Shown here: in pieces, positions 30,301 to 34,162 of the stretch
Layout of the letters: each line of letters begins with the position of its first letter
Position numbering within the stretch: position 1 is the first letter of the stretch
Source of the DNA: Entomortierella parvispora E1425
Lineage: Eukaryota; Fungi; Mortierellomycota
Assembly (NCBI GenBank): GCA_020891255.1
Contig: BQFW01000012.1
Coordinates: forward strand, 2,046,001 to 2,110,000
DNA length: 64,000 nt
Direction of reading: 5' to 3'
Position numbers and translations under genes: made by a program
The notes under the pieces: generated by a model
The model's database searches: none
What the model was told of the DNA's origin: nothing
Seen by the model: the letters and a program-made list of their open reading frames with translations, nothing else

Positions 30301-31204
30301 GGACCTTTCTCAGTTTCGCTCAATCGAATTCCGGCCCTGTTTGTTCCTGACCTAGTGGGGTGGCCACATTGCAAGCGCTATCGTAGCAATTGTGCTTTTG
30401 GCGTGCACCCTTTTTTTTTTATTCCTTTGGACTTGTTGGATTTGCCCGTCTTTGAGATCGACTCCCCCCATCCCCGAACTCACCCCACCTCAATGATCTT
30501 CGAATGCTTCATTGTTATTGTCTTCTGTTTATTCGTTTTGTGTGCGCGCCACAATGGGATGGGAATGAGACACGAGTCAAGAATTGATCAAGAATTGCCT
30601 CAACTCTGGAGGACCGATGGGTGGGTGAACCAACCACTGGGCGCTCCTCCACGTCCCCTCTTGCCACGCCTTGCCCATTCCCTTGCGAGCCCGTAGACTG
30701 CTCACTTTGTATCTCGTCTTTCGGCTTCCCAATTGGCAGATGCAGTTGTTTTTATTTTTTTTTCTTGTGTCCTTCATGTCCATGTTGAACTTCCTCCCCT
30801 TATCCCATTCTCAGCAGCAGGTGGGTGTTTGGTAGAACAACCAAAGTTCACATACGTGAAATCGGATCAGAAAACTGCGAAGGGACGAGCAATTGGATTG
30901 CATCCAGAACCAAAACAATAGAAAAAAAAATTGTGCAAAATCGGACCCGGCAACCCTAAGCCGACGGAGCATCGAGATCTTCCCAGACAGCCAAGGAGAA
31001 GGGCAGGAAGGCCGCTTTTGTTCTCTTCCACACGCCACATCTCCGACCTGTTCTCATGTGCCGCACCGTGTGGTGTCGTGTCTTTGGAAGGGCAGAAACA
31101 AAGCAGAAAGGGGTGCGAGAGCTATCAGATACTGTCGGGGCAAGGTTCATTTGTGCGTGCGGGGTTATGTTGTTATCTGCAAGTCCATTCGTCCATCAAG
31201 ACGC

Positions 31205-31210
31205 TATAAA
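31205..31210 (+). promoter_or_regulatory. Candidate TATA box of the ODC gene
   Basis: TATAAA directly before a long pyrimidine-rich, AUG-free leader. Confidence 0.4.
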
Positions 31211-31469
31211 ACCGCTCTGTGTCCCCTTCCGTCGTTTCTCTTTTTCTTTTCTTCTTTTCTCCTCACAGTTTTCTGTACATCCCACTTCCCACCATCTGCC
31301 CACCCAGCATCAACAGCTTCATCCCTGTTTCCAAAACACACACTTCCTTCCCCCCCTTCTTCTATTCCCAACAACCAACCCCAGCATCCTCCACCAGGGA
31401 TCCTCAGCTCTCCAACTGTTACTTTCTCTAGTCAGTTCCCCCCGTCGCCACTTTCAAATCTGCTAGACA

Positions 31470-31703
31470 GTGCACAACCTTTCTGTTGTCTATTTTCTTC
31501 TTCGTTTTTTCTTTAAAAAACACCCCCAACCTCCACCTTTCTCCCTGAAAAGAGATCCCCGGGCTTCCACCCATTTCCCATCTAGGCAGGCCGTTCACCT
31601 TCGGTTTGCTATTAACATCACGGCGCTACGCAACAGTAAAATCAGTTCCATTCTCTTTCGGCGATCGCCTCCCTGGCTTCCCGAGAACCAAGGTCTTGTC
31701 TGA
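31470..31703 (+). promoter_or_regulatory. Non-AUG upstream ORF with PPW motif (uCC-like) in the ODC leader
   Basis: Stop-free frame 31467-31703 with no ATG, ending ...LFRRSPPWLPENQGLV*. PPW codons at 31668-31676. In-frame near-cognate starts are GTG 31470, CTG 31545, ATT 31611 and ACG 31620 (context aacatcACGg). The stop lies 292 nt upstream of the ODC ATG. Confidence 0.75.
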
Positions 31704-31995
31704 ATTACTCTTTGTCTTCAGGCACACCTTTTCAAAAAAACGAACCTCGTTTTCCACTCTACTTCTATTATCGCACATCCTATTGGGAAGCTTTACTTCC
31801 GTCTTTTAGTCCCCCGTCCGTCCCTTTTGTGTCCTCCCTCCCTTCAACTCGTCTCGAAGCCCTGTCCAGGCCCACCCGAGAGAGTCCTCCCCTTCCCCTA
31901 AAACAAAGAAAAAACAACCCGCAGTAGTCCTGCTCCTCCTCCCCCGCGCTTTTTTTTCTATTACTTTTCCCCTACCCCTTGTCGTTTATTAAGCC

Positions 31996-33625
31996 ATGAT
32001 CGACATTTCGCTCCAGCAAGACCAGTTCGAGGTCGTCCCCACCTTGGTCCAGCCCACCTTGGTCGAGGTTCTCAAGTCCCGTGTCAAGGCCGACATGGCA
32101 CGCGAGGCTCAATTGCCCCAGGTCCACACCCTGCCCATCGATCAGATGTTGAACGCCCGTCTCGCCTCCTTTGATCCCGAGAGCGAGGACGCCGAGGCCG
32201 AGAATGCTTTTTACGTTGCCGATCTGGGCGAGGTTTACCGCCAGCACTTGCGCTGGAAGGCTCTTTTGCCCCGAATTGAGCCCTTCTTTGGTAAGTAAAA
32301 TCAAAGCCAATTGCTCTCTTTTGCAGGAATGGAAAAGGAACAACAACAATGGGTGGTTTCAGTGTTGTGGCTTTCCAGGGACGACCAGTTACGTCCTTTT
32401 GGGTTGCGCGCAGTCTCTCCAAAAGATTTTTTTTCCCTTTTCTTTCACGGACCCTGACCCAGGTCATTCCGACGGGGACCAATCTGACTTGTGTCGGTGT
32501 TTATCAGCGGAATAATAACACCGATCCCCTCCACCTCTCGTCAAACTAGCCATGAAGTGCAACCCTGACCCTATGGTGATGCGCCTTCTGGCCTCGCTCG
32601 GTGCCGGTTTCGACTGTGCTTCCAAGAACGAGATCCAGTCTGTGCTTGAGATGGGCGTCGACCCCAGCCGCATCATCTACGCCAACCCTTGCAAGCAGAA
32701 CTCGTTTGTCAAATATGCCCGCACCAACAATGTTCATATGATGACCTTTGACAACGCGGAGGAGCTGCACAAGATCAAGCGCTTCCACCCCGATGCTCAA
32801 TTGGTTCTTCGCATCTTGACCGACGACTCCAAGTCTCTCTGCAAGCTTGGACTCAAGTTTGGCGCACCTTTGGACACCACTGGATTCTTGCTGGCCACCG
32901 CCAGGGAGCTGAACCTGAACGTCATCGGAATCAGTTTCCACGTTGGCAGTGGATGCTTCGATGCCAATGCCTTTGGCGAAGCTGTCATCCGTGCCCGCCG
33001 TGTGTTTGATCAGGCCAAGGACTATGGCTTCGAGTTCAACTTTTTGGACGTTGGAGGTGGATTCCCATCGGCTCATGTGACTGAAGGGATCACATTTGAG
33101 AAGGTGGCTTCCATCTTGGGGTCGACCGTCGACTCTTTGTTCGGCCCTGAGGTTCGTGTCATTGCCGAGCCCGGTCGTTACTACGTGGGTTCGGCTTTCA
33201 CCCTCGCGACCCAGGTCATTGCCCGCCGTACCATTGCCCGCGACCTCGGCGAGATCTTGTCGACTGAGCAGAGCCAGAACCCCTCGCACATGTACTACAT
33301 TAACGACGGCATGTACGGTTCTTTCAACTGCATCATGTTTGACCACCAGGTCTGCGAGCCCAAGGTGCTCCTCAAGGACGGAGGATTTGCCTACAAGACC
33401 GCTGTGAACGAGCCCCATGGCTACGCTTCGGTCTGGGGCCCCACCTGTGACAGCATTGATTGCATCTCAGCCAAGTCGAGCTTGCCTCTTTTGGAGACGG
33501 GCGATTGGCTCTACTTTGAGAACATGGGTGCATATACCATTACCGCTGCCAGTCAGTTCAACGGATTCCGCAAGAGCGAGATTATGTACACTACCACAGA
33601 GCAGGAGGTTACCTTTCACTTCTAG
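31996..33625 (+). CDS. SPE1: Ornithine decarboxylase (PLP-dependent)
   Basis: Exons 31996-32290 and 32550-33625. AFYVADLGEV, PFF|AMKCNPD (PLP lysine), GFDCASKNEI, IIYANPCK, GISFHVGSG, LDVGGGF, IAEPGRYY, WGPTCDSID (catalytic Cys), MGAYT...FNGF. The catalytic residues are intact, so this is an enzyme and not an antizyme inhibitor. Confidence 0.97.
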
Positions 33626-34162
33626 GGAAGAAATGAAAGAAACTGAGGAACTCTGAGGAGTTGTTTTCTTTTTCCTACCAAAAAAAAAAAAAAAAAAAGA
33701 AACAAAGTGGTGTAATTGATGATAACAAGGACAGTTATCGTCTACAGAAGTCTTGACTCGAGTTGACGACCTTTTTGCCCTGACTTAAAGCGAATTAGTT
33801 CTGCTTTGTTCTCTTTTTTTTTCTTCGATCTTCAAAATGAGAATAAAAACTGGATTCGTTTATACAACTCCTTTTCTCCGGCATGTACCGTATGTTTGTC
33901 GATCGGGCCACCTAGACTATAAATGCTGAATACCAGGCAACCGAGAGGTTGTTGCACTTTGTGGGAAGAACAACTGGATGCTGCTGCGACCCAAAACCCG
34001 CCCTGAAATGAACCCCTCTGTGGTGGGCCATTGGATGTTGTGATTTTGCCACCAAAATATTTTGCCTTCAGCCACACGCGCAACGCGTCGACGCTCTTTG
34101 CCCCTTGCCCTCTTGTTTTTATTCTCCCCTTCCGCCTTTTCTGCAGACACCCAACAGCAACG

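Follow-up and report, generated by a model that had tools for sequence, protein, structure and literature searches.

A non-AUG, PPW-containing upstream coding region in the ornithine decarboxylase leader of Entomortierella parvispora, and a recurrent predicted hairpin before its start codon

The 5' leader of an ornithine decarboxylase (ODC) gene in the Mortierellomycota fungus Entomortierella parvispora E1425 carries a short upstream conserved coding region (uCC) that appears to begin at an ACG codon and encodes the motif Pro-Pro-Trp (PPW). The gene lies in a 64,000-nucleotide (nt) stretch of contig BQFW01000012.1 (positions 2,046,001 to 2,110,000, forward strand), which we call the window and within which all coordinates are numbered. 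We put at roughly 80% the probability that this element is a translated uCC of a Mortierellomycota ODC leader, working as the polyamine, eIF5A and ribosome-queuing switch inferred from the antizyme inhibitor AZIN1. Its anatomy, the selection on its peptide, its conserved weak start codon in a strong context and its presence in mature messenger RNA (mRNA) are read directly from sequence comparison, and the polyamine/eIF5A/queuing mechanism would be carried over from AZIN1 by analogy. The features on which this reading depends are as follows.

31245..31995, plus strand: ODC mRNA 5' leader of about 750 nt, C/U-rich, without ATG and without intron; the 5' end is approximate
31620..31703, plus strand: uCC with ACG start, 27 sense codons (TALRNSKISSILFRRSPPWLPENQGLV) and TGA stop; frame, length and stop are conserved, with purifying selection by codon
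31668..31676, plus strand: PPW codons CCU CCC UGG, where eIF5A-dependent stalling is presumed; the first Pro codon is 48 nt from the ACG

The original prediction had pointed to an ATG-less open frame on the plus strand at 31470-31703, ending in FAINITALRNSKISSILFRRSPPWLPENQGLV before a TGA stop (31701-31703) and containing PPW at 31668-31676. These coordinates proved correct, and the frame recurs with the same stop and the same PPW upstream of ODC in 10 of 10 Mortierellomycota loci, where it lies 275-388 nt before the ODC ATG. The ODC loci compared were both paralogs of Gryganskiella cystojenkinii and those of Podila verticillata, Mortierella alpina, Benniella and Lobosporangium, to which an unbiased search of metagenome contigs, using the peptide of ODC exon 1, added three metagenome or transcript contigs. 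The Mortierellomycota consensus reads TALRNS..(I/L)(L)FRR(S/P)PPW(L/H)P(E/G)xxGLV followed by the stop, and its length is 27 codons, or 26 in the Gryganskiella B paralog, which has exactly one codon fewer. Amino acid conservation is concentrated near the C terminus around two adjacent prolines, as FRR(S/P)PPW(L/H)P...GLV, and the PENQGLV tail after PPWL is also conserved at the amino acid level. PPW itself is invariant among all Mucoromycota uCCs examined and in a putative spliced chytrid uCC, except in one unplaced locus (L015), which has VPW. In the B paralogs of Gryganskiella and Lobosporangium (L005 and L006), the ends of the uCC are much better conserved than its middle.

Codon usage within this frame points to selection on the peptide. 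At conserved residues the codons vary synonymously, with Arg written as CGC, AGA or CGA, Pro as CCC, CCU or CCG, Glu as GAG or GAA, Gly as GGU, GGA or GGC, Leu as CUU, CUC or CUA, and Val as GUC or GUG. Over the last 15 uCC codons, the variable columns number 4, 3 and 10 at codon positions 1, 2 and 3, respectively. Nei-Gojobori ratios of nonsynonymous to synonymous differences per site (pN/pS), calculated for pairs of divergent A paralogs and the transcript contig L013, were 0.30-0.44 in the uCC frame versus 0.98-3.46 in the other two frames, in which the ratio was about 1 or above in all comparisons except one. By these comparative measures selection acts on the peptide, most strongly on its C-terminal half, FRRSPPWLPENQGLV.

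Four in-frame near-cognate codons had been proposed as possible starts, namely GTG 31470, CTG 31545, ATT 31611 and ACG 31620. All four are indeed in frame, and around the ACG the letters at 31617 (-3) and 31623 (+4) are A and G as claimed, but only the ACG withstands comparison among species. Among 31 distinct aligned fungal sequences, neither the ACG nor A(-3) ever varies, and G(+4) and C(+5) each occur in at least 90%. GTG 31470 and CTG 31545 were rejected since they lie upstream of indels that shift the frame between species; compared with G. cystojenkinii, the window shows two single-base indels upstream of 31620, and a TAA takes the place of the CTG 31545 region in that species. ATT 31611 was also rejected, being GTT in Lobosporangium and absent from L013, Mucorales and Glomeromycota. 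Nucleotides upstream of 31620 are still conserved, but their reading frame is not: the stretch GATCCCCGGGCTTCCACCCATTTCCC falls in three different frames among species, and the gap between GGTTTGCT and ATCACGG is 6, 7 or 8 nt. Because the ACG and its A(-3) are invariant and the frame is broken upstream, the alignment leaves ACG 31620, followed through 27 sense codons, as the sole credible start among the four candidates.

The same region is present in mature mRNA of related fungi, as the original prediction would have it. A transcript contig from an RNA-type run of a relative 90-95% identical to the window (X1) aligns without a break over 31268-32289, extends 23 letters upstream of that alignment start and then skips 32291-32549, which is bounded by GT..AG. 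Since X1 is spliced across the ODC intron, both the uCC and the hairpin described below belong to the mature transcript, and the leader is intronless. In L013, a metagenome or transcript contig from a more distant Mortierellomycota species, the ODC intron is likewise absent and the uCC lies within a leader of at least 548 nt. The leader lies within the longest ATG-free stretch of the window, counting both strands (31170-31995, 826 nt). By itself this is marginal, as ATG was also absent from 101 of 2000 dinucleotide shuffles; the absence of ATG is repeated in the full-length Mortierellomycota leaders, which measure 434-880 nt and mostly at least 699 nt. The leader is largely unstructured, with a median fold energy of -2.8 kcal/mol for 40-nt windows.

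In other lineages the uCC appears to be interrupted by an intron. The uCC of Gigaspora margarita (L009) is split by a phase 0 intron, GTAAAG...TTGCAG, at 1925-2428, and a Glomeromycota transcript-type contig (L014) with an uninterrupted 472-amino-acid ODC open reading frame (ORF) carries the uCC contiguously as TALQKQVIKLIVFRGHQRSPPWQPCNFNVA followed by a stop. In the chytrid Spizellomyces (L091), removal of a putative phase 1 intron, GTTTGT...TTTTTAG (2284-2353), gives a frame that reads TYFPSRLNIRLLPGILPEPPWAGAEGA and then a stop. The proposed introns thus split the uCC one or two codons before PPW in Gigaspora and apparently also in Spizellomyces.

Immediately upstream of the ACG is a predicted hairpin, which is the more interesting by-product of this analysis.

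31585..31610, plus strand: hairpin HP1, with 5' arm GGCAGGCCG (31585-31593), loop UUCACCUU and 3' arm CGGUUUGCU (31602-31610); a predicted fold of 9 base pairs (bp), 3 of them G.U
31611..31619, plus strand: 9-nt spacer AUUAACAUC from the hairpin to the ACG, containing A(-3) at 31617

HP1 is the most stable local fold of the leader, with a minimum free energy of -13.5 kcal/mol (z = -3.4) that 0 of 200 shuffles equalled, and because 3 of its 9 bp are G.U it can pair only as sense-strand RNA. It is retained in seven Mortierellomycota sequences, in which all changes preserve pairing. We looked for a counterpart in Mortierello-, Mucoro- and Glomeromycotina, one chytrid and Pezizomycotina, and in every lineage examined a hairpin of 7-10 bp ends 8-12 nt before the ACG (16 nt in one locus, L029). 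The stem sequences differ among lineages while complementarity is retained, as listed here by 5' and 3' arm.

Mortierellomycota: GGCAG(G/A)CCG and CGGUUUGCU
Mucorales and Umbelopsis: CGGACUG and CAGUCCG
Glomeromycota: GCACUUUUC and GAAAGGUGC
Unplaced Mucoromycota-like transcript L015: GCUCUAAAAC and GUUUUAGAGC
Pezizomycotina-type loci (more than 40): (U)GCCUUUGG and (U/C)CAAAGGC(A)

Among the Pezizomycotina-type loci are those of the Dothideomycete Saccharata proteae and of lichen-fungus contigs with 85-87% identity to ODCs of Teloschistales. In Spizellomyces, 9-10 nt separate the hairpin GCACUUC...GAAGUGC from ACC ACG U; this case was spotted by eye once the pattern was known and counts for less. 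When the 60 nt preceding the start were shuffled by dinucleotide, the chance of an equally good stem at that position was 0.0003-0.03 per lineage, and fold z-scores across loci ranged from -1.8 to -6.0. Within clades, the stems vary by single pair-preserving changes (G.U to A-U or G-C) and the loops vary freely. A coding role for the hairpin was considered and set aside: it reads TAFGLLKG in many Pezizomycotina loci, but its frame relative to the ACG varies among loci, and stops as near as 7 codons upstream of the ACG in Pezizomycotina also argue against it. No Rfam family matched the hairpin region, and no mention of such a hairpin was found in the literature searched, which included PMC2811004 and lay outside the original 2008 and 2018 reports by Ivanov and colleagues.

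Together with the common A..ACG GC start, the presence of this hairpin across fungal phyla suggests a single ancient origin. Tentatively, and at somewhat less than even odds, we propose that the fungal ODC uCC is one ancient module composed of a sense-strand hairpin, a spacer of 8-12 nt, the start A..ACG G, a Thr-Ala opening and a polyproline stall, with the hairpin as an integral part. The stall motif of such a module may be PPW in the chytrid and in Mucoromycota and PPP in Pezizomycotina. If true, one origin would contradict the separate origins described for the Zygomycota and Pezizomycotina uCCs (PMC2811004).

Several further structural observations were made in the same leader. Just upstream of the hairpin (31557-31584), Mortierellomycota share a conserved block, CCCCGGGCUUCCACCCAUUUCCC, that does not keep to the frame. 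RNAalifold predicted a long-range helix between GGGCUUCC (31561-31568) and GGAAGCUU (31786-31793) that would enclose both hairpin and uCC; the helix is broken in two of seven sequences and shows almost no covariation, and GGAAG/CUUCC (31786-31800) could alternatively form a small local hairpin. After HP1, the most stable local folds predicted in the leader are two weakly supported ones. The first, at 31656-31686, would place the PPW codons in its apical part. The second, at 31691-31729, has a predicted stem, GUCUGAA/UUCAGGC, that contains the uCC stop and is changed on both sides in L013 (GUGUG/CGCAC). The 30 nt 3' of the uCC stop are conserved though non-coding.

The mechanism we favor follows that established for the AZIN1 uCC, in which polyamines, eIF5A, a stall and a queue are linked (PMC9082881, PMC11550727). 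When polyamines are low, most scanning 43S complexes would leak past the weak ACG and initiate at the ODC AUG. When polyamines are high, eIF5A would be impaired and the few ribosomes translating the uCC would stall at PPW; ribosomes queuing behind the stall would lengthen the dwell over the ACG and so increase initiation there. Queue and ACG initiation together would shield the ODC AUG, and the resulting fall in ODC translation would restrain polyamine synthesis by negative feedback. Measured from the P site at the second Pro codon, the ACG is 51 nt away in the window; the figure for Mucorales is 54 nt and for the Pezizomycotina type about 81 nt. This range of 51-81 nt amounts to roughly two or three ribosome lengths, which is compatible with a queue and proves nothing. 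The hairpin might re-form at the 40S mRNA exit with the ACG in the P site and hold the scanning complex over the weak codon, or it might be directly stabilized by polyamines. Both roles, a backstop at the 40S exit against backward sliding or a polyamine-stabilized structure, are speculative.

Three other explanations have to be weighed against a translated, polyamine-sensing uCC. The region could be a conserved non-coding element of the ODC leader, such as an RNA structure or a protein- or DNA-binding site, that is open in one frame by chance and is never translated. Nucleotide conservation does begin about 60 nt before the ACG and continue for about 30 nt beyond the stop, in stretches that cannot be coding, and local hairpins are predicted within the uCC frame and over its stop codon. 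A non-coding element, however, would not be expected to confine third-position bias and low pN/pS to the uCC frame, to retain an Arg through a double change from CGC to AGA, or to limit length change to a whole codon (that of Gryganskiella B) with the stop position conserved. The proposed introns of Gigaspora and Spizellomyces would likewise preserve the frame, and of the Kozak positions around the ACG, -3 is invariant and +4 nearly so; we regard a purely non-coding element as extremely improbable. Only slightly better are the prospects of the frame being translated from another near-cognate codon (AUU 31611, AUC 31617, or the upstream CUG 31545 or GUG 31470), which we judge very improbable. 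These codons are in frame within the window, AUU is the usual start of animal uCCs (PMC2811004), and most A paralogs of Mortierellomycota keep AINI. Beyond the indels and the G. cystojenkinii stop that lie downstream of GUG and CUG, and the GUU of Lobosporangium and the absences in L013, Mucorales and Glomeromycota that count against AUU, the distance from hairpin to ACG varies by 1-2 nt without the frame being kept, and the codon preceding the ACG is highly variable in Pezizomycotina.

A different kind of alternative grants that the uCC is translated and has it repress ODC constitutively or in response to another signal, such as initiation stringency or eIF1 and eIF5 levels. Near-cognate upstream ORFs (uORFs) generally respond to start-codon stringency, and our literature searches found no polyamine experiment for any Mucoromycota uCC. 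Against this, ODC is the rate-limiting enzyme of polyamine synthesis, PP-W and PPP are classic eIF5A-dependent motifs, and the AZIN1 uCC, which also carries PPW, does respond to polyamines (PMC2811004, PMC9082881, PMC11550727). A uCC that is not a polyamine sensor thus seems to us improbable, if the least so of the three.

Some points do weigh against the polyamine-switch reading and against the part we give to the hairpin. In E1425 we infer all of translation of the uCC, stalling at PPW and dependence on polyamines. The transcript support comes from a relative 90-95% identical and from metatranscriptome contigs, other than the E1425 strain. The LPENQGLV tail is unlike the LS of Mucorales and the PS-stop of vertebrates, and the stall could occur at termination or elsewhere. 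RNAalifold found no double compensatory changes in the hairpin within clades, and the stems are also conserved as sequence, so the covariation argument rests on the comparison between clades. To our knowledge, upstream hairpins are not known to enhance near-cognate initiation.

The gene downstream of the uCC and the remaining features of its leader and promoter are as follows.

31205..31211, plus strand: TATAAAA, the likely TATA box of the ODC promoter; read directly and retained in G. cystojenkinii
31704..31995, plus strand: 292-nt spacer from the uCC stop to the ODC AUG; the conservation profile shows conserved blocks at 31704-31735 and 31776-31801
31996..32290, plus strand: ODC exon 1, with ATG at 31996, from the ORF and splice junction; the joint in transcript contig X1 is 32289/32549
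32291..32549, plus strand: ODC intron, GT..AG, 259 nt, spliced out in transcript contig X1
32550..33625, plus strand: ODC exon 2 including the stop codon; catalytic residues intact, 383 bits to mouse ODC 7odc

The position of TATAAAA fits a transcription start near 31245. The window ODC is 96% identical to that of G. cystojenkinii, and its top matches are all from Mortierellomycota. Aligned with mouse ODC 7odc, the protein retains K69, H197, GGGFP, EPGRY (E274 and R277), D332 and C360, which bears out the earlier claim of an intact enzyme downstream, and it scores 383 bits against ODC versus 271 bits against AZIN1. Judged by these residues and scores, the gene is a catalytically intact ODC, not an antizyme inhibitor. 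In the genomic 3' flank after the ODC stop, a run of about 20 A (33668-33690) was skipped as a repeat in the transcript read layout. Mortierellomycota have two ODC paralogs in different neighborhoods: paralog A adjoins a SAE2-domain gene and paralog B, exemplified by L005 (Gryganskiella) and L006 (Lobosporangium), adjoins an SPX/Na-sulphate symporter gene, with L001 and L005 representing the two paralogs in G. cystojenkinii. The hairpin and the uCC are present on both paralogs.

Zygomycete ODC uCCs have been known since 2008, so an instance in Mortierellaceae is unsurprising. The present comparison extends the uCC family to both ODC paralogs of Mortierellomycota and to Glomeromycota, where an intron interrupts the frame. 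It also places the start at ACG 31620 and supplies a clear rule for annotating a feature missed by gene callers. The hairpin may aid near-cognate selection and bears on the coupling between queuing and start-site choice; if its role is real, it would bring RNA structure into the ribosome-queuing model. The hairpin and the common start across phyla go beyond the original prediction and, if unreported, are new as far as could be checked in the literature searched.

uCCs have been described in ODC homologs of animals, Pezizomycotina, Basidiomycota and Zygomycota, with AUU, UUG and ACG as putative starts, and almost all of them have two adjacent prolines near the C terminus (PMC2811004). The Zygomycota uCC has "as few as 22 codons" (PMC2811004). 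Upstream of ODC in Mucor, Rhizopus and Umbelopsis we find (P)I TA(S/T)ETRLVDSLFDRRGFPPWL(S/A) and a stop, exactly 22 codons from the ACG; this frame can be written ACG GCC ... LFDRRGFPPWLS or TA(S/T)ETRLVDSLFDRRGFPPWLS, each followed by a stop, with ACG GCN ... LFxRRGFPPWLS as the general form. Its 22 codons and ACG start fit the published description of the Zygomycota ODC uCC (PMC2811004). Compared codon by codon, the window and these three genera have in common AUC ACG GCN, (L/I)(F/L)xRR and PPWL, and by this alignment the window uCC is homologous to the short Zygomycota ODC uCC. The two are alike in their ODC gene, their AUG-free leader, their ACG GCN start with A(-3) and G(+4), a hairpin 9-12 nt upstream of the start, and the distance from ACG to PPW (48 nt in the window, 51 nt in the three genera). 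They differ in length (27 codons versus 22), in the tail, seven residues longer in the window, with PENQGLV following PPWL versus a single S or A, in RRS versus RRGF before PPW, and in the stem, GGCAGGCCG/CGGUUUGCU being unrelated to CGGACUG/CAGUCCG; Mortierellomycota also have the uCC on two ODC paralogs. The unplaced transcript-type contig L015, whose ODC is 89% identical to a Mucoromycota-like protein (P0113), has the hairpin and the ACG (156-242) and a uCC that ends in PSNPRGVPWRPYTLGLR and a stop, with VPW in place of PPW.

The AZIN1 uCC of vertebrates has an AUU start, PPW and a PS-stop and is responsive to polyamines (PMC9082881, PMC11550727, PMC2811004). The window element resembles it in being a uORF with a non-AUG start in an ODC-family leader, with PPW near the C terminus and, presumably, the same logic of polyamine, eIF5A, stall and queue. 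It differs in its ACG start (the AUU at 31611 is not conserved), in a start-to-PPW distance of about 16 codons versus about 30, in its LPENQGLV tail without a PS-stop, and in being on a catalytically active ODC rather than an antizyme inhibitor; in the window the mechanism would hold by analogy. The original comparison with AZIN1 was right about the differing start and tail, but the nearest relative is the fungal Zygomycota uCC and not the AZIN1 form. The broader proposal of a non-AUG PPW uCC on ODC is supported by the comparative data, as are its expectations that the PPW frame and start codon be conserved in relatives, both among the Mortierellomycota loci and in the alignment of fungal sequences.

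The "Pezizomycota" uCC is described as about 100 codons long and of independent origin from the Zygomycota uCC (PMC2811004). In Saccharata proteae, the lichen-fungus contigs and many soil contigs, we find an ODC uCC of 31-62 codons of the form TA...h(I/F/L)NxhPPP(A)... with a stop. It shares with the window the hairpin, the 8-12 nt spacer (16 nt in one locus), A..ACG G, the Thr-Ala opening, a polyproline motif near the end, a position 300-700 nt before the ODC AUG and an AUG-free leader, and differs in having PPP rather than PPW, in its 31-62 codons and in its stem, UGCCUUUGG/UCAAAGGCA. Further afield are the polyamine-responsive uORFs of AdoMetDC, which are AUG-started in plants (PMC2811004), and that of Saccharomyces cerevisiae HOL1 (cited in PMC11550727). 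Both belong to genes other than ODC, and they resemble the window element as short conserved-peptide uORFs on mRNAs of the polyamine pathway, with repression by stalling a likeness by analogy only.

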